A stretch of DNA of 12,366 nt from Bugula neritina. Its lineage: Eukaryota; Animalia; Bryozoa. The notes below the pieces were generated by a model. It was given only the letters and a program-made list of their open reading frames with translations. It did not search any database and had not been told where the DNA came from. The first letter of the stretch is position 1. The number at the start of each line of letters is the position of its first letter. This document shows, piece by piece, positions 314 through 12,366 of the stretch. The stretch spans positions 1 through 12,366 of the forward strand of contig CAXIUT010000247.1 in the NCBI GenBank assembly GCA_964035545.1. The letters run 5' to 3'. A program made the translations under genes and the position numbers.

Positions 314-766
314 TCAACTCCATCTTCTCACAGAAGTCAATCTACTTTCTGCTTTTGTAGAATTTGTTTTTAACAATCCATCAAGATATTTTTGATCTTT
401 AATATGATTTATTCTGCTCTCTCCTCTATCTTGTTCATATTTACTCCACATTAACTTTTCCTTCATCATGCAATCTTCTTGAGAATGTTTGATATCATTA
501 ATAAATTTTATTCCTTCCTCTTCTCTTTTATTTCTTGAATCTCTGAGTCCATTTCCAAGAGTTTATGATTTCTAAAGAATCTTTTCAAGACCTAAATAGT
601 TTTTAGAGATACCTTCAGTTGCTTGATTAGCTCTATTATCAGCTCGTCTGCTTGTTCGAAGCAAATCAGTTCCTACATTGAAGATTTATCTATCCAAGTA
701 GGGCACTCTTGAGTATAAAGGAACATAGTGCTGGTATACTCTTTGATCATGGTATTTTCCAAACAT
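314..766 (-). CDS. Hypothetical protein, about 150 aa (UAR=Glu code)
   Basis: The frame runs from ATG at 766 to TGA at 316-314 with no internal TGA: MFGKYHDQRVYQHYVPLYSRVPYLDREIFNVGTDLLRTSRRADNRANQ...KAESRLTSVRRWS*. A second in-frame TGA follows two codons later. No family recognised; start and end are less certain than for the conserved genes. Confidence 0.6.
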
Positions 767-871
767 TTTATTGGAAGTATTCTATCTAAATTAATATTTA
801 TTGAAATCATAAACTTTGATATAAAATTAAATAATAGGCAAACAAATATAAAATAAAGTTTATTGAATCAT

Positions 872-1715
872 TCAATTACTTTCATATACCAAATCGAAAA
901 AGACCAATTTGAACATCAAAAACAAGAAGATTTGAGCTGCTCCAATAATTCCATAAACTATAAAAGCTTTTTTCTACAAATCTTACAAATATTCAGCCAA
1001 GTTGAAAACCAAAAAAGCAATTGAATTGATCATACCATAGATCATCAATATCCAATGAAGCCAAGACCATGGAAAGATACTCAACAAAAAGACAAGAATA
1101 AAGCAACCAAAAGAATATCCATAGATACATACAATCTAAATAATATGATCATTACCTCAGGAAATTTAAGAGTATCACACTTAAGAAATTTGAGTAGAAG
1201 ATACAAAATGGCAGGAATACCAAAACCAATTCCATAGATCAAAACAACTCCATATCTTACAAGTTCCAATTTGAAGATATATTCTGATTTCTACCAGTTG
1301 TAAAAGTATCTAGATAGATTTCCTGTAGAACCAAGAAGGAAAATAATGGTAGTCAGAATCCATAGAGGACCATAGAAGTCAGGATTTTATCTAATCTTTT
1401 CAATGAATTCTTTCTTAATAGGCATAAAGTTAAGTTTGATGCGTTCAACCACTTGCTCCTGACTGACTTGGAAATACTTCTAATAGTATGCCAAACTGCA
1501 GAATCGAGTACAACCTTGCTGTTCCTACTCATGGTTGGATGAAGAGTTGATAGGTGGTTATTGTGGCTGTTAGGATTTCCTTTCCTATACTGTTTAATGA
1601 TCCATCTTGATCGTGCAAAAAGTACTTTGTAGAAGTCTGGCTATTCTGGCTGAGGTCTTTCTTGGGTGCGAGGTGATTGACTCACATCTTATCCATCTAT
1701 GCTGTATTCCTCCAT
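872..1715 (-). CDS. YIPF1: Yip1-domain Golgi membrane protein, YIPF1/YIPF2-like, 267 aa; exons 1715-1626, 1605-1156, 1135-872
   Basis: Translation gives SLAYYEKYFQVSQEQVVERIK...ENPDFYGPLWILTTIIF and PEIVCIYGYSF, matching the YIPF1/2 motifs (NPDLYGPFWI, EIVCVYGYS), plus several hydrophobic segments. Two 20-nt GTA..AG introns restore the frame. Spliced length is 804 nt, ending in TGA at 874-872. Confidence 0.9.
1136..1155 (-). other. 20-nt spliceosomal intron (YIPF intron 2)
   Basis: GTAATGATCATATTATTTAG; removal joins ...KFPE to IVCIYGYS, a conserved motif. Confidence 0.92.
1606..1625 (-). other. 20-nt spliceosomal intron (YIPF intron 1)
   Basis: GTACTTTTTGCACGATCAAG; removal joins the ATG-1715 frame to the Yip1-domain frame. 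It lies in a non-conserved N-terminal region, so support is weaker. Confidence 0.75.
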
Positions 1716-1781
1716 TCAATTTTTAAACTAGTAAATATTATACTCACAGAATTCACATTCAATATCAGATATATCAAACTA

Positions 1782-2705
1782 TCAATATTCCCTACTTGCA
1801 TATTTTGACTTATCTAGTGATTAAAAGTAAGGATGATTCAATGCCTCTTCTGGTGTTATTCTATTCAATGGATCATAATTTAACATTTGCTTCAATAAAT
1901 CGATTCCTTCAGCTGATATTTTACTACATTGGGAATCTAGTTTATTTTCAGTCCATTTAGGAAAAGTTGCCTTGAAGTCTTTGAGATTTACAACTGAAGG
2001 CCAAGTAGTTGGAGTTGGAGTTCCTAATATTTTGAATATTTTGAAAAGTTGATCTATTTCTGAATCTCCACAAAACAAACATCTTTTATGAGCCATCTCA
2101 TAGAAAATACATCCAATCGACCAAGTATCTACAGTTGGATAGTATTTTTCCATTCCCAATAAAATTTATGGAGCTCGATACCAGAGAGTAATAATTTAGT
2201 GAGTATACTCTCTCAAAGGGTAAGTATAGACTCGTGCCAATCCAAAATCAGCTAATTTGATATTCAGAGCCTCTTTGTTTACAAGTATGTTCTGAGGTTT
2301 GAGATCGCGATGAACAATTCTGTTGGCATGACAGTACTAGATTGACAAAAGTAGTTGGTAAATGACAGCTTTTACTTGTTCTTAGTTCATAATGGTCCCT
2401 TAGAGGTACTTTTTGAGATCACAGTCGACATACTCAAAGATAAGATTGAGTTTGTTTTCAGCTGATACGACTTATTTGAGGTCTACAATGTTAGGATGAC
2501 TGAGTTTTTTAAGGAGAGATATCTAGCGAACAGCAGTAGATGGAATTCCTTAATCTTAGTGGTCAAGTCTGATCTTTTTGACTGCCACTATGTCGTTAGT
2601 AATTTTATCTCTAGCCTTATAAACCACTCCATAAGTCCCTTAACCTATTTTGCTGATTCTTTGGTAGCGTTAGACTTCACTTCCACCTGAACTATCAATG
2701 ATCAT
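1782..2705 (-). CDS. CDK1: Cyclin-dependent kinase, CDK1/cdc2-like (PSTAVRE variant), 307 aa, intronless
   Basis: KIG[TAA][17 protein letters not shown], [TAA]D[TAA]GIPSTAVR[TAG][23 protein letters not shown][TAA]IITLWYRAP[TAA][23 protein letters not shown]. Length 924 nt, ATG 2705 to TGA 1784-1782, with 12 in-frame TAR codons. Confidence 0.96.
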
Positions 2706-2898
2706 GATAACGGTCTTGGTAATTAATACTAAAATTATCAGATAGTTATCAATAAAAATCCTTTTAAACTAATAAAAAATTATATTAATACTAAAATTTC
2801 ATAAAAAATAACTCTCAATGGGACCTATTAAAAAAAGATCTCGTTATTTTATCACTATTTAAAATCATCCAAAATATAAGCATCAATGATCAAGAATA

Positions 2899-3930
2899 TC
2901 ATCTTATCATAACTTTTTTTTAAACAATTGATTAAGCAGAATCAGCAACAGAATCTTTTTGTTACCATGAATAGGTATTTTTAGCTTGATATAAATTATG
3001 CATATTTTTACTAAAAGTAAAATCTTTTGGTAATTTATCATTCTGATAGCTTCTTTTCACATTTTATTAAAAAACACTAGACTTATTTCTCACCTCAGGA
3101 GATATATATTTAGACACAAAAACTTGAGAGGAATCAACCATAGATATACTTTTAAAACTTTATGACTTGTATGTATTGATCTTACTCCAATAGATATCCA
3201 TAATCTCTCTAAACTCTTTCAACTAAATACTGCCATTGATTTCTTTTATATTCTCACAGACATCTGACCTTAATAGTTCAAACTATTAGTAATACTGACT
3301 GATTTTACTTTCTTCTTCTCTAATTTTTAACAACTGTTTTTAAATGATATTTTCATGCTATTGTATCTATCTATCATACTTTTTATTTATCTGACATATA
3401 ATTTCCCGCCTCTATTATTCGATATCTTATCTAATTTTAACAAAATTGTTTTATATATGGTACTTTTCTCTGTTAAACACTCCAAATTTATCATTTAAAG
3501 TAGTCAAAATATCCTCACATACTTTCACATATTCTTGAGCCTATGTCAACATTTTTGAACCAACATCATCTTTTTTGACTAAAATTACTTTCCTTCCTTT
3601 ATGATTCAAATCAAAAGCACATTCTTCACAGTAGTAAAAAGGAGATTTGTCAAATTATAGCATATACTTTCCCATCTTCTCCCGATGGTTTATACATTTA
3701 GTAGACACATAACTATTCTTAGTTTAGAAAGAAGGTCGAGTAAAAGTCTTCTTTTGTGATGATTTATCAAATTGTACAGGACGATGACTATTCCGAGGAG
3801 AAAGACTAGGAGATCTCACAATCTATTTCTCTAGTTTAGGCTTACTGTAAAAATGATTGGTTATATTGAGAAGAGGATTTCGTTTCATTTTTGGAGATGG
3901 CTGAGGTTTAAGAAGTTTAATGCCTTTCAT
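2899..3930 (-). CDS. Hypothetical protein, 343 aa, with N-terminal D-box-like motif, degenerate B-box-like Cys/His cluster and coiled coil
   Basis: TGA-free frame from ATG 3930 to TGA 2901-2899, with a backup TGA three codons later. It contains RNPLLNITN (aa17-25), C79xxH82...C101xxC104...H110 (CINH...YYCEECAFDLNHKGRKV), then a charged helical region. Confidence 0.8.
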
Positions 3931-3974
3931 TTGAAATATTATCGTTATTTATAAGAATAAGTATTTATATGAAT

Positions 3975-3980
3975 AAAAAA
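3975..3980 (-). terminator. RNA polymerase III terminator (T6) of the tRNA gene
   Basis: A run of six T on the minus strand immediately follows the tRNA discriminator base. Confidence 0.8.
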
Positions 3981-4052
3981 TATCCTGACAGGGAATCGAA
4001 CCCTGATTAATGGTTTTAGAGACCACTGTTCTAGCCGTTGAACTACCAAGAT
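3981..4052 (-). tRNA. tRNA with CUA anticodon (UAG-decoding), probably tRNA-Glu(CUA)
   Basis: 72-nt cloverleaf on the minus strand: acceptor ATCTTGG/TCAGGAT plus A73; D-arm GTTC-AACGGCTA-GAAC; anticodon arm GTGGT-CT(CTA)AA-ACCAT with the anticodon at 4019-4017; 4-nt variable loop TAAT; T-arm CAGGG-TTCGATT-CCCTG. A and B boxes are intact and there is no intron. The amino-acid identity is inferred. Confidence 0.95.
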
Positions 4053-4377
4053 TTATATTTATATCTGTTTTTAGGAATCAAAATACCACCCCTTTTTCCT
4101 TATACAAATATTTCTAAGTAAATAAGTTTAAAGTATTCTTTAAATGGTTCAATAATCTTATTACAATAATTCTCCAAAATAAAAGAAGAAGAAAATCAAA
4201 TAATTATAAACAGATAAAGTAAATATTATTTATTATTCTTGTAAAATTGATAACTACAAAAATGAAAGATATTTTTTAAAATTCTTTTTATATTATTTCA
4301 TACACTGAAGCTGATAAATGGTGTTTTAATAACAACATTAATAATTTAAAATATTTTATTAATAATCGAATTTACTC

Positions 4378-7057
4378 ATGCGTTTGTCGAACAGCCGTTT
4401 GAGCCACGAAGAACAAGTTAAGGTAGTAGTTCGTCTAAAACCCTAACAGACCTAAAATCCAAAAAATAAATGTGTCTACCTCTCTTAACAATAAAATCAT
4501 CTTGTTGTATAAACAGATCTCAAAAAATAAATATTCGTCTTCGATCACGTAGCCCATCAATTCTCCTCTCAACAAGATATCTACGAAATGATAGGAAAAG
4601 AAGCAGTCACCGCCAGTCTCGAAGTACCTCTCTCGTGATCCAGGGATATAACTGTTGTCTCTTTGCCTACGGACAAACTGGAGCAGGGAAAAGCTACTCC
4701 ATCATGGGAGATATTGTAGAATTACAAATCGATCCCAGTTGTAAAAGCAGAGGTATTATCCCCAGATTGCTATAAGATCTGTTCAGTTCGATTTAGTAAT
4801 CGAAAACTAATTTTTCAGTTATCTGCTCGTACATAGAAATATACAATGAACAGATTTATGATTTGGTACTAATCGAATAATATAGCTTTCGTCTGATAAA
4901 AGAGTTCATCAGATAAGGTAAGATCACAGGAAAGGAGTTTTTGTTGAAGGGACCATAGAGATTAAATTGAATTCTTATCAATAGGCTATTTAGGTTCTTT
5001 TAGAAGGAGATAAAACAAGAAAAATAGCAACCACATCAATGAATAACTAAAGTTCACGCTCACATGTCATCTTCTCAATAGTCATTTAATCGTAAATTCG
5101 ATAAGGATAAGTATACAAAACAAAGAAATCAAAACTCAATATAATTGATTTAGCAGGCAGTTAAAGAGTCAAGTATACAAACGTTGAAGGATAGAGATTA
5201 AGATAAGGTTGTAATATCAATAAATCTTTACATGTGCTTGGAAATGTCATCAATTCTTTAGTTTAATCAACAAAAAAGAAAAAACATATTCCCTATAGAG
5301 ATTCTAAACTTACGTATTTTCTTAAAGATTCTCTTGGAGGTAACTCAATAACCAAGTTATTAGCTAACGTTCACTGCAAAAAAGAATATTATGGAGATAC
5401 TTTATCAACTCTTATGTTTGCTAAGAGAGCTAAAATATTGAAAATGAAGGTATAAGTCAATTAAAATTGTACATAAAATTATTAATCTTTGAGAAATCAA
5501 ATCAAAAAGTTGAGATCTGAGCTAGCTGAAGCTAAATATTTTAGATAAAGTTCAAAAACTTAAGGGACAAGTTTTTATGAACTTGAACCTCAAAATTTAT
5601 AAAGATATACTGAACGTTCAGTATAATCATTACCAAGTACAAGCATCGTCAAAGTTTTCTAATAAAACTAAATCCACTATAAAACACTCATTTAAATGTA
5701 CTAAGAACATATGAAAAATTGTGTCAATATAAATAAAAGAAGAAACAGCATAAATAGAATATAATAATGGAAAAATCTATAAAGAAAAAATATTGCCTTG
5801 ACTAATCTAGTCAAACAATTTCCTAGCTTTACCAGAATATACAAAGAAAATATATTATTGAAACAATAAAGAAATAAAATAGATTAATGTTCAAATTCAA
5901 CTTAAAAATATACCAATAAGAAAGGAAGTACTCAATATACAACCTTTATTTCAATAAAATAACCTTAACAAGAACAAAAATAAGTATCTTTGGAGTAAAT
6001 AATAAAAACATATTAAGATCTAATCGATAATATGAAGACTAAATTTACTTAGCAATTTGATATTCTTGAGAAATCTTATATTTAGTTAGAACAAGACTGC
6101 AACTTAAAAGATAAGAAGGTTAAATAACTTATAAAAAGACAAAATCTTCCTCCAGATATCTAATAATTACAAAATTAAAATTAGTATCTTCAACTAAATA
6201 TATTAAACCTTGAAAATTAGATAAAATAATTATAATAAAATATCAATAAGTTAAATCTCTAAAAAAGTAAAAAACTATTTCATAAAAAAACACACTAAAA
6301 ATAAAGTTTTTATCAAGAATAAGATGATGATCTTGTAAACTATCTATTATAAAAACTTTCATAAATAAAGAAATAAGCATAAGAGGAAGAAAAGATAGCA
6401 AATACTTAAAAATAAAACATGTAAAGTATAATATCTTAACTAAATGCTCACATAGTATCACTTTCTAATTAAAATAATAAATTAAAATCAAAAAATCAAA
6501 GAAGTTTTAGCCAAAGAAAAGAAAAATAACCATAAAAATACCTAGATTAGATCTTTCTTTCAGATAGTAAAAATTTTAGACATAAAAAAATATTTAAAAG
6601 CTAATAACCCATCAACCATTCTGATATCTAATTCAATAACGCACAGTCCAACTTAATCGCCACCTTAAAAATGGAACTCAAAATGAAACAAAAATAGACT
6701 AATAGTCTCAAATAGTAGGTATAAAAATTTGATTTATAAAATAAAAAAGTTGAAGAATAGTTTGGAAAAAATATAAATAATATCATCAAAGAATATAGAT
6801 AAATATATCAAAAACAATTTTCACCACCTCAAATAAAAACAACAAAAAGCATCAGTCGATATAAATAAGAATATTGTCAAAGCATAAAACCTTAAAATAA
6901 AAAATACACCTAAAGATATAACAATAAAAAGTCATCAATCGACAGCAGAGATATCAAAGATAAATAAACTCCTAAAAGCAAAAAGAAAGAAGAATTAAAT
7001 CAAAATGATATTTATAACTATAGTAGTAGTAAAGGCAAGTTTTTTACAACCCGATGA
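4378..7057 (+). CDS. N-terminal-motor kinesin, KIF15/kinesin-12-like, 879 aa; exons 4378-4623, 4644-4865, 4886-7057
   Basis: [34 protein letters not shown] (P-loop), [29 protein letters not shown][TAA][45 protein letters not shown], then a long coiled-coil tail with no TGA until 7055-7057. Spliced length is 2640 nt. The subfamily call rests on IREDxxKGVFV and ANVH and is tentative. Confidence 0.93.
4624..4643 (+). other. 20-nt spliceosomal intron (kinesin intron 1)
   Basis: GTACCTCTCTCGTGATCCAG; removal gives the conserved ...SLE|GYN. Confidence 0.93.
4866..4885 (+). other. 20-nt spliceosomal intron (kinesin intron 2)
   Basis: GTACTAATCGAATAATATAG; removal gives the conserved IYDL|L and restores the motor-domain frame. 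Confidence 0.93.
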
Positions 7058-7106
7058 TCTTTCCTCACTCTTATATATCACTATATTATCCAAAAATATC
7101 TAATCA

Positions 7107-8918
7107 TCAAATAATCGGTTTCCAATCCTTTTTCACTGGCTCATTGTATTTCTTACTTTTAACTGCTTCTCTCTACATCAGCAAAGGCTCACTCTGGTAT
7201 ATATCTTCAAGATTCACTTTAACTTGGTTGTCAGATATTGCTTTAGGATATATTTGCACCTTAGATGATCTACCTAGTTCACAATCTACCCGATTCTTTA
7301 GTATCTAATTGTACTCCTTTTTATTTTTATCAGCTTTTTATTTCTTTTTCTTTTTTATTTATTACTTTTCTATCTTTTATTCTTTATTTTTCTTGATATG
7401 ATTCACATAAGCATCGTACTTTAGAGTAGAATGAGGTTGAATTTTTGGTTCTTAGGTATATTTTCTTACCTTTTTACTTTAAACATGCTCTTATTCATAA
7501 TCCTTATAATATTTATTCAACTGATCTTTAGGTTCACGAGGTTGACTTAAGTTAAAAGGTTTCACTTGGGTTGACTTTCTTTCTTAATATTTATATTACT
7601 CCATTTCAGCCATACCCCTTCGATGGATGTCTTCAAAATTAGGAATAGATTTTTGTTTTTCCACATATTTTTGTTTTGTATATTTCTTTTCTAATTCTAT
7701 ATTTTTTTATTGAATAACTTCAGTATAATTATTAAGATATTTCATTGTTGATGGATAATTTGAAGAATGCAAAAGTTCTAGAGCTCTTTTTTTCTTATCA
7801 TCCTAACTAGCCAATTTAATTTGTTTAGGATTATAAGTTGTTTTTGGAACCTATTTCGGATTAATATTTCTATTTTTATCCCAATTATAATAATCTTCTA
7901 TTTTAATGACATCAGCTTTAGCAGTCAGATTAAAAGGCTATGGTTTTGTCTTTTACATTTGAGATTTAGGCCTTTATTTTGGTTTATCATATGTGCTCTT
8001 TGGGATAGGATTCGCATGAAACTTATTTTATTTTAAATCTTATTCTTTATTATCTGAAGCTATCATTTTATTATTAACTATTTTCTCCTTTATTTCTGGT
8101 TAGTAAGGAATAGTTATTTTTTTATTTAATAATTAATTAATAATTTACCAATCTAGTTCCCTTTATGATTAATTCTTTCCAAGTGAATTGATATTATTTT
8201 TATCAATAATATTATCTTCAAAATCATTTAAATTAAAATATCCATAAAAGAAGATGTTTTTCTTAAGCAAATCCTTGAACTATTTTAATTTTATAGTTCT
8301 TTAATTTTAAGTATTAATATTATAGCATACTCTACTTAAATAGTTTTAGAAGTCCAACCATAGCTAGTCATTACCTATTTTCTTTTTAAGAAGATAGCTA
8401 GAACTTTTAAATAAAATAAATTAACAAAATACCTCATTAAATTACATATTTTTATTTTTCTTATTTAAAATTTATACCAATTTCTATTTGATTTTTTCAT
8501 ATTAATTCTTGTATAATAATTTATTTGCTTTCTCTTAATAGTTATCAACTTTATGATAAGTTTTCATAAATTTCTTCTCTTCCTAAACTCTTCGATTATT
8601 CTATTCTTATTAATTAATATCAATTATTGATTCTTTTTTATTTACACTCACTAATCTTAATATCGATTTTTGTTGCTATTCAACTATCTATCGAGTCTTG
8701 TTCTATTTAGGCAAAGATTGTTAGTATAGCTATTTTAAGTTACCTATTTTTAGTTGAGAAAATAAATCATCATCATTATCGTTTATTGTTGTTTATGACT
8801 CATTATTTTGCTTATGAGGAGGGTGATAGTTTCTAAAGCCAGCAGAATATTCCTTTCTCACGGGCTTTTTCTTGACCTGCTGATAAGTACTTTAATTTTA
8901 GAATTATTAAAGAAACAT
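7107..8918 (-). CDS. FAM161: FAM161 (UPF0564)-like centriole/basal-body microtubule-binding protein, 603 aa
   Basis: TGA-free 1812-nt frame from ATG 8918 to TGA 7109-7107, followed by a second TGA. The C-terminal half has FAM161-type motifs in the expected order: KITIP, KFHANPIP, PEPFNL, PKEVPKTTY, RALELLHSSNYP, IPNFEDIH, TQVKPFNL, PLLMER. The family was recognised from memory of motifs only. Confidence 0.75.
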
Positions 8919-9078
8919 AACTAACTATTATAATCTCAATTAAATAACTTTTCCTTAATTATGTTTATTTTTATCCATATTTAAACTAAAAAAAACTATA
9001 AGAAAGATCAAAGACCTTGAAATTTAACATATTTTTAAAGATCTAATTTTGTATAATAAATAATAATTTAAAAGAGAA

Positions 9079-10335
9079 ATGTAGCCATCTCTTCAACCAA
9101 ATCAAAACCAACAATGTCCATATCTATCCACAATAAAACGCCATTTGCTCGACTTCGATCTCTAGAAGATCTGTTGCATAAGTCTTTCAAACACAAACAT
9201 TTATTCTTGTCTGATATGTGGAAAATATTATCAAGGAAAAAATATTGAATCTCCCCTCTACGAGCACAGCATCGAATTCAATCATCATCTCTTTATCAAC
9301 CTCACAACAAACAAAATATATTGTTAACCCGATAACTACGAAGTACAATCACATACTCTCAATGATATCAAGTTCAATTTACAACCTGTTTATCATAAAA
9401 CTGATCTGGAACTCCTCTATTCGTATCAACAAAAATACAACATAGATGGAAAATCTTATATTCCAGGAATAATTGGTATTAACAACCTAAAAGGTACTGA
9501 CTATGCCAACTGTGTCTTTCAATTATTCAATACAATTAGACCCATCAGATAGTTCTTTTTGCTTGATTAGCACTTCTAAGATCCTTTTCTTTAAAAATAT
9601 AGTATTTTCATAAAGAAGATATGGAACTATCAGCAGTTTAAAGGATCTATCAGTCCACATTAAATAATGCAAACTATTACTGATAAATCTAATAAATTGT
9701 ATAAGATAGGGAAAAAAAGTGATCCCTCTAACTTTATCATCTGGTTCATTGATAACCTTTTTAGGAGTTTGAAAAAATAAAAAAGCAAATTCAATCTTTT
9801 ATCTCTTTTTCAAGGTAATATAAAAACATCCTACATTAAAGGCATTAAAAATTCTGCTTAATATTAAAACTTTCCAACAAAAATAGAGAATAAAAATTTT
9901 ACCATCATAAAACTATAATTTCAAGAAAGAGGTATCTTCAATAAAGTCTAAGATCACGTTGATATCAAAGATATGATGGAATATTACCTTGGATCTAAAG
10001 GAAAGACTCAAGGAGAAGGGCTTTTATATGTTTTGATCACATAGTTTCCTCAATATCTCATTATAGTCTTCAAAAGATTCACTTTCAATGATTATAAAGT
10101 TTAAAAAAATACAAGTCAAGTGATCTACTCAGGCTTTTTGTAAATTTAAGGTCATAAGTATAAGCTAATAGGGCAGATATGTCATCAAGGTAGTGCATAG
10201 AATGGTTCATACAAAGCGTCAGTATGTCATGGAGACAAATGGTTCGAGGCCTAAGATTTGATGATAAGCTAGGTTCTTAAAAAGCAGATGTTACTAGGAG
10301 AACCTTACATTCAGTTGTATTAAAGAATTAATTGA
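9079..10335 (+). CDS. USP39: U4/U6.U5 tri-snRNP-associated protein 2 (USP39/Sad1): ZnF-UBP plus catalytically inactive USP domain, 418 aa
   Basis: CPYLSTIKRHLLDFDL[TAG]KIC, YSCLICGKYYQG, HHLFINL, PDNYE, YIPGIIGINNLKGTDYAN (Asp in place of the catalytic Cys, diagnostic of USP39), KKIWN..FKGSISPH[TAA], KRFTFNDYKV[TAA]KN, YIQLY. ATG 9079 to TGA 10333-10335, no intron needed. Confidence 0.95.
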
Positions 10336-10355
10336 TATCTACTTGTTTATAATTA

Positions 10356-10882
10356 ATGTCGAATTTTAAATTATCAACAAAATTTACCTTTTGGCTTCAA
10401 GAAGGAGATACAGTCAAATACTAACTCTACTCATAAAGTCTTAAAGCAATATCTACTTTCTCAGAAAGCAAGTAGTTCTGGTAATTTTTCCAATTCCTCA
10501 AAAAAACCACTGATCTTCCAAGTATTTATGTTAATATGTAGATTGTGATATGTATCTTTTCAAGTAGGGTTTGAAGCCCTAGTGGTAGGACAAAAGTAAC
10601 GTGGGTGGAGGTTTTTTCAAGATTCGTATATAAAAGAAGCGTTCAAATAAGCTTTGGGAGAACAGTGTATTTAGTATGATAAGTCCAAAAAATAAACATA
10701 TCGATATAATGAATGGAATTAGAATTAAAATTAGATAAAATTATGATTAACTGTAATTATGGATGAATTCCTCAGTTTCAGATAAATAAAAACTATAATC
10801 AATGAAAAACTATATAAAAGAAAATGTACTAATCACAGACTAAAGATCTTTCAATGTCATACCATTCGCATCAAAAAAATGA
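10356..10882 (+). CDS. eIF4E: eIF4E-family cap-binding protein, divergent (class II-like aromatic pattern), 168 aa; exons 10356-10521, 10542-10882
   Basis: LSTKFTFW, TFSESKEFW, DMYLFKEGLKPEW[TAG]DKSNVGGG, KLWEN, GIRIKIR...LELW follow the eIF4E aromatic-residue ladder. One 20-nt intron; spliced length 507 nt; TGA at 10880-10882. Confidence 0.9.
10522..10541 (+). other. 20-nt spliceosomal intron (eIF4E)
   Basis: GTATTTATGTTAATATGTAG; removal joins ...DLP-N to CDMYLFK in frame. Confidence 0.92.
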
Positions 10883-10931
10883 TAAAAATAAACTAATCAT
10901 ACAAATTTATATATATTTATCAATATTAATA

Positions 10932-12122
10932 TCATCTAAGATGAGATATATTCTAAGCAGTCACTGCTAACCTAGAATTAGTAGACTATATTATTTCTAC
11001 AGACTTATTTTTTCTATCTAGCATTTATCTAGCTTCTTAATCCAATCTAATATAGTTAGCTAGCTATTTTTATATTTCATTATTATTTCTTTAAGCTTCC
11101 ATTATCTACATAAGTATTTTATCAACTCTTTAATTAAGAGATTTATTCTAAGACGATAAAACCTGATGATCATTATACAACCCATCTCGATCCAATATTG
11201 CTGAATCTAAATTATTTTAAACCTTTCTTAACTAACTCTCAAATGTTTTCATAGTTTGAGCCTGCTCCTTATTACCATTCATCATCTTCTGCAAATTGTC
11301 ACTCACCTAGTTATAATCCTCTTGACTTTTAATACACTACCTTTATAGTTTTCTTGTTTTGTCTCGCAAATTGTCTATCTAAATATTTAGAGTTTCTAGT
11401 TTTTTGTATGTAGTATTTACAACATGATCTCTACTTTCAGCTTAATCTAATAACTATATATTTTTAGATCTACATCATTATTATCTTTTTATGCTACAGA
11501 TAAAATACTATGTAATTTATTATTTGCTGCCTATATACTTCTCCCTTATTTCTACAAAGCCTTCAATAATTCCATATTCTACTACAATGATACCACATAT
11601 CTCTAATTTTAAACTTCAATCATATTTCTATCTTATTTATGATTTTTAATCTAAATTCTAAAACATTTACTTTAATAGTTTGATTTTTATTTTACTCATT
11701 TATCTGTTAGTTTTGAGCATTTATCTATTGATTAGATTTTAACAAAGCTCCTATCTAATTCTATTTATTCTAACAACTTCTCTTGATACCTGTATTGTCC
11801 CTCAGTATCTCTTCGAATTGAACTGATAATCTATGAATTTGCATCTTTATATTATCACTCTCAGTTCTCAATTCAAGAATATTCTTTCTATTAATCTACA
11901 ACTTAATTCTATGTATAATTAAAGTTACTTTTGTTCGCTTTATATTCTTTACCTTTCATCAGCTAACATATCATACTTTGATTCAATATTATTCACCTAA
12001 TTTTCTAAAGGAATATATTAATGCTCTTTATCTTTCAAATCGTAGAGCTATTTTTTCAAGGATGCGATCAATGACTCTTTTTGATTATTTTCAATTTGTT
12101 CACTATTATTTCCTCTGTACAT
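10932..12122 (-). CDS. Coiled-coil protein of unknown function, 376 aa; exons 12122-11929, 11908-11671, 11650-11474, 11453-10932
   Basis: MYRGNNSEQ...KESLIASLKKELYDLKDKEHEY...ELANYIRLDEEAREMLDRKNKSV...HLR*. Heptad-like, E/K/N-rich throughout. Three 20-nt GTA..AG introns sit where the TGA-free frame switches. Spliced length is 1131 nt. Confidence 0.85.
11454..11473 (-). other. 20-nt spliceosomal intron (coiled-coil gene intron 3)
   Basis: GTAGATCTAAAAATATATAG; the downstream frame has a TGA just upstream of this point, so a frame switch is required here. Confidence 0.85.
11651..11670 (-). other. 20-nt spliceosomal intron (coiled-coil gene intron 2)
   Basis: GTAAATGTTTTAGAATTTAG, located at a required frame switch. 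Confidence 0.85.
11909..11928 (-). other. 20-nt spliceosomal intron (coiled-coil gene intron 1)
   Basis: GTAACTTTAATTATACATAG, located at a required frame switch. Confidence 0.85.
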
Positions 12123-12210
12123 TTATTATAAACGTTAAAGACTCTTCAAAATATATATAATTATTATCATACAATCAGAATAAAATAAAAATATAAAAAT
12201 ATCATATTCA

Positions 12211-12366
12211 GGGGTTGGGGTTGGGGTTGGGGTTGGGGTTGGGGTTGGGGTTGGGGTTGGGGTTGGGGTTGGGGTTGGGGTTGGGGTTGGGGTTGGGGTT
12301 GGGGGGGTTGGGGTTGGGGTTGGGGTTGGGGTTGGGGTTGGGGTTGGGGTTGGGGTTGGGGTTGGG
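12211..12366. repeat. Right telomere, (GGGGTT)n
   Basis: Tandem GGGGTT from 12211 to the end, the reverse complement of the left-end repeat. Confidence 0.98.

Follow-up and report, generated by a model that had tools for sequence, protein, structure and literature searches.

Does a genome whose introns share a single, very small size splice them by measuring their length? This question is raised by contig CAXIUT010000247.1, which was deposited in an assembly of the bryozoan Bugula neritina (GCA_964035545.1) and whose 12,366 nucleotides (nt), taken at full length, are referred to below as the window. An earlier note had listed eight introns in it, all of exactly 20 nt and all with an invariant A at position 15, and had proposed a spliceosome that measures length. 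We consider the whole best explained by very short introns of the U2 type in a ciliate that uses UAA and UAG (UAR) as glutamate (Glu) codons, with a length that appears peaked at 20 nt and not absolute. To this reading we assign a probability of roughly 0.8.

Eight 20-nt introns and their predicted excision

The eight noted 20-mers are each unique within the window; the minus strand carries five of them and the plus strand three. As the earlier note had described, they start with GTA, end in AG and carry A at position 15 followed by a pyrimidine (T in seven, C in one). Two lie in gene A, which encodes a Yip1-like membrane protein (i1, 1136 to 1155, and i2, 1606 to 1625; minus strand, both phase 0), and two in the kinesin gene D (i3, 4624 to 4643, and i4, 4866 to 4885; plus strand, both phase 0). 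The eIF4E-like gene G has one (i5, 10522 to 10541; plus strand, phase 1), and gene H, for a coiled-coil protein, has three on the minus strand (i6, 11454 to 11473, and i7, 11651 to 11670, both phase 0; i8, 11909 to 11928, phase 2).

When any one 20-mer is excised, two open frames fuse; excision of all eight turns every gene model into a complete open reading frame (ORF) under NCBI genetic code 30. For i3 the window offers further evidence, as this intron lies at a junction of the Pfam Kinesin profile. There, excision is exact to the nucleotide because the profile runs from position 72 to position 73 across the junction, with positions 43 to 72 stopping at 4623 and positions 73 to 106 beginning at 4644. 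At the junctions of genes G and H the stop-free flanks are too short for family scans, and orthology was used instead. A general frame-rescue scan for GTA..AG segments of 12 to 45 nt was uninformative, as nearly everything stays open when TGA is the sole stop.

Strain variation was assessed by comparing contigs from public sequencing runs over positions 850 to 6849 of the window, using four low-coverage genomic runs from three studies (X3, X4, X5, and X9). The strain contigs continue through the introns, where substitutions occur only at intron positions 12 and 13 and no insertion or deletion is seen. The variants are at window positions 1613 and 1614 (in i2) and 4635 (in i3, position 12). The sole pair of indels among these contigs (5314/5316) is exonic, and the frame is restored.

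Orthologous intron sites in related assemblies

Relatives were found by a word search with a piece of the cyclin-dependent kinase (CDK) gene, whose matches were protein fragments from metagenome, Logan and NCBI contigs; these led to five related assemblies. The assemblies L001 and L008 come from the same species, with a GC content of 38 to 39%, and L009 is NCBI assembly GCA_041156805.1, with 88% DNA identity to the window. In L001/L008 the whole gene block is found with order and orientation kept and with protein identities of 39 to 83%. An intron stands at all eight codon positions, its phase unchanged and its inner sequence unrelated. The lengths in that species are 20 nt (i1), 19 nt (i2), 22 nt (i3), 20 nt (i4), 22 nt (i5), 20 nt (i6), 20 nt (i7), and 21 nt (i8). 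Introns i3, i4, i6 and i7 fall at the same codon as in the window, i5 splits the same Asn codon, and i8 splits the same Lys codon and contains an in-frame TGA. Elsewhere, i1 and i2 measure 21 and 22 nt in L003 and 20 and 19 nt in L004 to L007. In L009, i2 is kept at 20 nt with 6 of its 20 positions changed, all of them within positions 5 to 14. Counting the further element described below, each of the nine intron sites of the window has a counterpart intron in one or more relative species. From species to species these lengths leave different remainders modulo 3 and shift the reading frames differently, so that colinear proteins result only from removal of exactly these segments. A tblastn alignment with a single high-scoring segment pair had suggested that i3 and i4 are absent from the relative's kinesin gene; reading of the frames refuted this, and both are present.

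The Yip1 ortholog of L001 contains an additional 20-nt, phase-2 intron, GTACAATCACTATTATCTAG, at approximately 10985 to 11004 on the plus strand, between ...KLELVR and YGVIL.... The window, L003, and L004 lack exactly this intron, which could represent either a lineage-specific gain or repeated loss.

Could the eight elements be something other than introns, such as assembly errors, programmed frameshift sites or leftover internal eliminated sequences (IES)? In favor of this stands the lack of any RNA run found for the locus in which removal could be seen. Yet the same 20-mers recur in the independent low-coverage runs of three studies, and their codon positions are conserved in five other assemblies where the effects on the frame differ and the protein stays colinear. 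The extra Yip1 intron of the relative, precisely missing here, also speaks against it. IES of the Paramecium type are bounded by TA and are missing from macronuclear DNA. The elements end in GT-AG, unlike the TA-TA of such IES, and they occur on a macronuclear chromosome with telomere caps as well as in the four DNA runs, so that IES remnants were rejected. We regard an explanation without introns as hardly credible. On this comparative evidence, the eight 20-mers are in all likelihood genuine tiny GT-AG spliceosomal introns, by their signals of the U2 type.

Sequence signal

Both the GT..AG ends and the GTA start are found in 26 of 26 introns, nine from the window and 17 from relatives. The motif GTA-N11-A-Y-NN-AG has nine matches in the window against 2.85 expected, a number reached by none of 200 dinucleotide-preserving shuffles, and eight of the nine matches are the claimed introns. 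The remaining match (10810 to 10829, minus strand) was rejected as an intron, since it is antisense to gene G and within the chance expectation. When the same end motifs are sought at other lengths on the sense strand of the eight genes A to H, length 20 gives eight matches, and lengths 18, 19, 21, and 22 give none. This length spectrum is weak in the GC-richer relatives, being flat in L001, with L004 and L005 showing only a mild peak at 20 nt.

An A six positions from the 3' end (-6) is present in 23 of the 26 introns, the exceptions being the three 22-mers, in which an A occurs at -7 or -8; at -5, an A is found in only one of the 26. Measured from the 5' end, the A is at position 14 in 19-mers, 15 in 20-mers and 16 in 21-mers, and the extra or missing bases of the 19- and 21-nt introns fall 5' of it. 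The invariant A15 of the earlier note is therefore accurate for the eight 20-mers, but the conserved coordinate is -6 from the 3' end, as the window's own 21-mer (A at position 16) also illustrates. This A is likely the branch adenosine, as its conservation suggests.

Positions 4 to 14 had been described as unconstrained. This description does not hold: a T occupies position 8 throughout the nine introns of the window and recurs in i2 of the close relative. In more distant relatives the position is mostly a pyrimidine and is not invariant. Intron position 8 is not known to pair with U1 or U6.

It may be asked whether this pattern is a product of ascertainment and chance, the 20-mers having been found because they were sought, with other lengths equally common and the -6 A reflecting background A-richness. 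Detection by frame shift is indeed blind to introns with a length divisible by three (3n), as the earlier note had itself cautioned, and one 21-nt element was missed for this reason. AT-rich DNA with TGA as its sole stop also offers many alternative GT..AG pairs. However, with nine introns every gene becomes a complete ORF colinear with its orthologs, with no further GT..AG insertion, and the length spectrum of the window peaks at 20 alone. The -6 A also exceeds background: the probability of A at a given inner position in all eight introns by chance is 3e-5, and any invariant inner column arises in 1.9% of shuffles. The A persists in the GC-richer relatives, where it is often the sole A from -9 to -4. 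Ascertainment and chance are thus largely refuted as an explanation, and we consider them very improbable.

A ninth element and the question of fixed length

Gene I of the window harbors a ninth intron candidate, the 21-mer GTATCTCTAAAAACTATTTAG (592 to 612, minus strand, phase 1). It is in frame, contains no TGA, has A at -6 followed by T, and ends in TAG. At this site the same codon (a Gly codon split after ...E-G) carries a phase-1 intron of 20 nt in three relative species. Gene I runs in a single frame in the window, and its orthologs change frame near residue 55. Removal of the 21-mer gives gapless colinearity with the orthologs, whereas its retention adds seven codons without a TGA. The element is probably an intron missed by frame-shift detection, and we treat it as a candidate with regard to splicing.

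When the nine genes of the window were aligned to spliced orthologs, no further window-specific insertion bounded by GT..AG was found in any of them. A second 21-nt fit to the motif in gene I (424 to 444, minus strand), the only other strict sense-strand match at 18 to 22 nt, ends in GAG and encodes the segment W-SKYEQDR-G, which is kept in all relatives; it was rejected as an exonic decoy. This decoy suggests that the base at -3 (GAG rather than YAG) or the exact length may matter for recognition. An insertion of seven residues in the kinesin of a relative (RSMIDFG) is not bounded by GT..AG and was set aside as an ordinary indel.

The statement that all introns are exactly 20 nt long is correct for the eight that were listed but fails for this ninth element, which the earlier reader had not modeled. 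In the window, a single 12.4-kb chromosome, eight of nine introns have 20 nt and one has 21 nt. Among the orthologous introns of relatives the share of 20-nt introns is 10 of 17, the others having 19, 21, or 22 nt; the two shares do not differ significantly (Fisher p = 0.13). As far as these sites can tell, intron length is sharply peaked at 20 nt without being an absolute rule, and the clade tolerates 19 to 22 nt.

A stricter alternative is a molecular ruler, in which only introns of 20 nt with a fixed branch A would be accepted, length would replace the polypyrimidine tract, and the 21-mer of gene I would stay unspliced as seven codons. Several observations fit such a ruler. Eight of the nine elements in the window have 20 nt, and four introns that measure 19, 21 or 22 nt in the relative (L001/L008) all measure 20 nt here. 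The sole element of another length is 3n and TGA-free and is thus of the kind able to survive unspliced. Moreover, the fixed-spacing motif is nearly sufficient to locate the introns, with nine matches in the 24.7 kb of both strands. Against this, the very sites in question hold introns of 19, 21 and 22 nt in relatives, and the clade thus has a tolerant machinery; the 21-mer at its conserved site keeps GTA, A(-6)T and TAG; and the excess of 20-mers over the relatives is the nonsignificant one given above. The strictly length-measuring spliceosome of the earlier note is not borne out by these comparisons, and we consider it unlikely. Similarly doubtful, in our view, is a history in which lengths nearly collapsed onto 20 nt after the split from the relatives with 19 to 22 nt, the spacing from GUA to branch A to AG became the main recognition signal, and the element at 592 to 612 was pushed out of the accepted range by a one-base insertion and is now turning into coding sequence.

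The reading of short introns with a peaked length also has to accommodate 3n introns, and the relatives contain two, both of 21 nt: i8 of L008, with an in-frame TGA, and i1 of L003, without one. By this comparison, 3n introns do occur in the clade, and they escape searches that depend on frame shifts.

Chromosome, genetic code and gene content

The window is capped by telomere repeats at both ends, (C4A2)n on the left (1 to 74) and (G4T2)n on the right (12211 to 12366), both read directly. It is a complete, telomere-to-telomere ciliate mini-chromosome from the macronucleus and carries one transfer RNA (tRNA) gene besides nine protein genes. Intergenic spacers measure 20 to 190 nt, and only 20 nt separate the stop of gene F from the ATG of gene G. 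In the relative L001/L008 the gene block lies on a contig of at least 42 kb, flanked by further genes at both ends and without a telomere; therefore, chromosome fragmentation differs between species.

Under the standard code the window has nearly no ORFs, and with TGA as the sole stop long ORFs tile it. In the CDK motif PSTA(I/V)RE (PSTAVR-E in the window) the Glu is written TAG, in YTHE, in RAPE and in the kinesin motif DLAGSE (here DLAGS-E-R) it is written TAA, and TGA terminates nine of nine genes. The code is the peritrich nuclear code (NCBI table 30), with UAA and UAG as Glu and UGA as the only stop, because UAA and UAG occupy positions at which CDK and kinesin have an invariant Glu, and because a tRNA(CUA) is present. 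This code reportedly had a single origin, in Peritrichia (PMC10553269). Paramecium, which reads UAR as Gln, is excluded as the source, and the comparison with Paramecium drawn in the earlier note rests on the wrong genetic code. An exact look-up of one standard-code ORF from the window had no recorded match.

The genes are described in order from the left end. Gene I (314 to 766, minus strand) is an open frame under code 30 for a small conserved protein of approximately 143 amino acids after splicing; its orthologs in L001 to L007 have 56 to 73% identity and are syntenic, next after Yip1. Gene A (872 to 1715, minus strand) has three exons and a complete spliced ORF. The Yip1 assignment comes from a weak Pfam match of its orthologs, and two Yip1 exon pieces of the window itself have no Pfam match. 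Gene B (1782 to 2705, minus strand) is the intronless CDK gene, with Pfam Pkinase matches on two colinear pieces and a gapless alignment to its orthologs over 307 amino acids.

Gene C (2899 to 3930, minus strand) is a single ORF for an unnamed protein, with no intron detected. Its residues 86 to 110 (3601 to 3675, minus strand) form a Cys-rich, window-specific segment of 25 residues that is not aligned in the L008 ortholog. The segment is not bounded by GT..AG and was rejected as an intron. In a gene that evolves fast, it probably reflects an ordinary indel or an effect of the alignment.

The tRNA gene (3981 to 4052, minus strand; Rfam tRNA, 62 bits; ARAGORN anticodon cta) encodes a suppressor tRNA with anticodon CUA that reads UAG. 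The syntenic tRNA gene of the relative (L001, 8265 to 8336) has anticodon UUA in place of CUA. The two genes are identical at 59 of 72 positions, their acceptor and anticodon stems show paired changes, and it appears from this alignment that an orthologous tRNA gene swapped between UAG and UAA reading.

Gene D (4318 to 7057, plus strand) is the kinesin gene, with three exons, Pfam Kinesin matches on four pieces and a complete spliced ORF. Gene E (7107 to 8978, minus strand) is a single ORF for an unnamed protein, with no intron detected. Gene F (9079 to 10335, plus strand) encodes a USP39/Sad1-like zf-UBP protein (Pfam zf-UBP, E = 5e-13). No intron was detected in it; the alignment with its ortholog (72% identity) stays in one frame throughout, and the gene is intronless in both the window and the relative. 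Its zf-UBP domain is N-terminal, and the protein resembles USP39/Sad1. The latter is a protein of the tri-snRNP (small nuclear ribonucleoprotein). Gene G (10356 to 10882, plus strand) has two exons and a complete spliced ORF, and the product of its ortholog matches Pfam IF4E. Gene H (10932 to 12170, minus strand) has four exons and a complete spliced ORF, with an approximate start codon and an ortholog in L008.

Proposed mechanism and significance

We propose that the whole intron would be recognized as a single unit. The 5' GUA would pair with U1 and later with U6, the -6 A would serve as branch adenosine, and the pyrimidine that follows it could pair with a G of the U2 GUAGUA box. The 3' splice site would be the first AG past the branch A, usually as YAG, and the spacing would leave no room for a polypyrimidine tract. 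This spacing would be tight and not absolute, as introns of 19 to 22 nt presumably function at the same sites within the clade. Our reading of the -6 A and of the pairing between the pyrimidine and U2 draws on established knowledge of splicing.

The length itself may act in error control. A retained 20-mer, of 3n+2 length, shifts the frame and reaches a TGA within 4 to 90 codons, and retention would in this way be exposed. A frameshifting length matters when TGA is the sole stop, because short AT-rich 3n introns rarely contain TGA. The peak at 20 nt could then result jointly from pressure towards compaction, a lower limit specific to the lineage, and selection that disfavors 3n lengths.

Several considerations weigh against the reading of short U2-type introns with a peaked length, or against parts of it. 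No public run found for the locus is recorded as RNA, and the four runs examined are genomic and contain no splice joints. It is conservation alone that places the putative branch point, and positions 9 to 14 are weakly complementary to the U2 GUAGUA box. The argument from 3n avoidance has to contend with the two 3n introns of the relatives, one of them without TGA, and the selective explanation as a whole, 3n avoidance and compaction together, is one that we infer. Finally, the 21-mer at 592 to 612 may be either spliced or translated, and we count it as a candidate intron only.

Ciliates with one dominant intron length reveal the minimal sequence needs of the spliceosome, and the clear case so far is the 15-nt class of heterotrichs. 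The window adds a second, independent lineage in which the A at -6 is kept, with five more upstream bases, a non-3n length and a single stop codon. This suggests that two ideas can be separated, namely that the 3' spacing is mechanically constrained and that the total length is set by the geometry of the lineage together with frameshift quality control. Nine orthologous sites with 19 to 22 nt, together with an extra intron specific to one lineage and an in-frame 21-mer in this species, provide a natural experiment on the evolution of intron length. For annotation, code 30 should be applied, introns of 19 to 22 nt should be allowed, and in-frame 3n introns should be sought by orthology.

Comparison with known systems

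Chlorarachniophyte nucleomorphs have introns of 18 to 21 nt in an AT-rich, compact genome with the standard code. The window resembles them in the length class of its introns and in its AT-rich, compact genome. A nucleomorph origin is excluded by the use of TAA and TAG as sense codons and by the C4A2 telomeres of a ciliate.

Like Paramecium, the source of the window is an oligohymenophorean ciliate with very short GT-AG introns, in which 3n lengths are disfavored and retention is tied to disruption of the frame (PMC12862383; PMC13685798). Introns of Paramecium bursaria have a median length of 24 nt and range from 15 to 100 nt, and the median in Paramecium tetraurelia is 25 nt (PMC12862383). 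Non-3n introns are described as a means of error control in Paramecium and other ciliates (PMC13685798). In contrast, lengths in Paramecium are spread over several nucleotides (the middle half being 23 to 26 nt), whereas eight of nine here have 20 nt, near the lower tail of the Paramecium distribution; UAR is Gln in Paramecium and Glu here.

The code is shared with peritrich macronuclear genomes (PMC10553269). In Campanella sinica, Epistylis hentscheli and Vorticella campanula, intron lengths are said to be "similarly narrow" to those of Paramecium (PMC13685798, 2026), and the text consulted gives no modal length, branch-point position or ortholog comparison for peritrichs. Introns are not mentioned in PMC12411067, on seven peritrich genomes.

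In heterotrichs, more than 80% of introns are exactly 15 bp long (PMC13685798). Stentor strictly conserves the GUA, and its putative branch A, at position 10 in 15-nt introns and position 11 in 16-nt introns, likewise stands at -6 (PMC9505925). The introns of the window are like those of Stentor and Blepharisma in that one length dominates, the 5' end has GUA, the AU-rich interior lacks a strong branch consensus, a polypyrimidine tract is absent, and the putative branch A is at -6 (PMC9505925; PMC13685798). They differ in length, with 20 nt instead of 15 and five extra bases between the 5' splice site and the A, and in being 3n+2, so that retention shifts the frame, whereas the 15-mers of heterotrichs are 3n and rely on in-frame stops. 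Intron density is also higher, at approximately 0.8 per kb of coding sequence compared with less than 0.1 in heterotrichs. The lengths thus fall outside the 15- to 16-nt, mostly 3n class of heterotrichs, and both lineage and code differ, UAR = Glu pointing to Peritrichia. A heterotrich-type system has one length in more than 80% of introns genome-wide; the corresponding figure here is eight of nine at 20 nt, for this chromosome only. Convergence with heterotrichs, as the earlier note had proposed, is plausible because the organism uses the peritrich code, and what would be shared is the -6 geometry. Overall, narrow intron lengths in peritrichs are already partly in the literature, and the introns described here combine a Stentor-like 3' geometry with five more bases, a non-3n length, and a different lineage.

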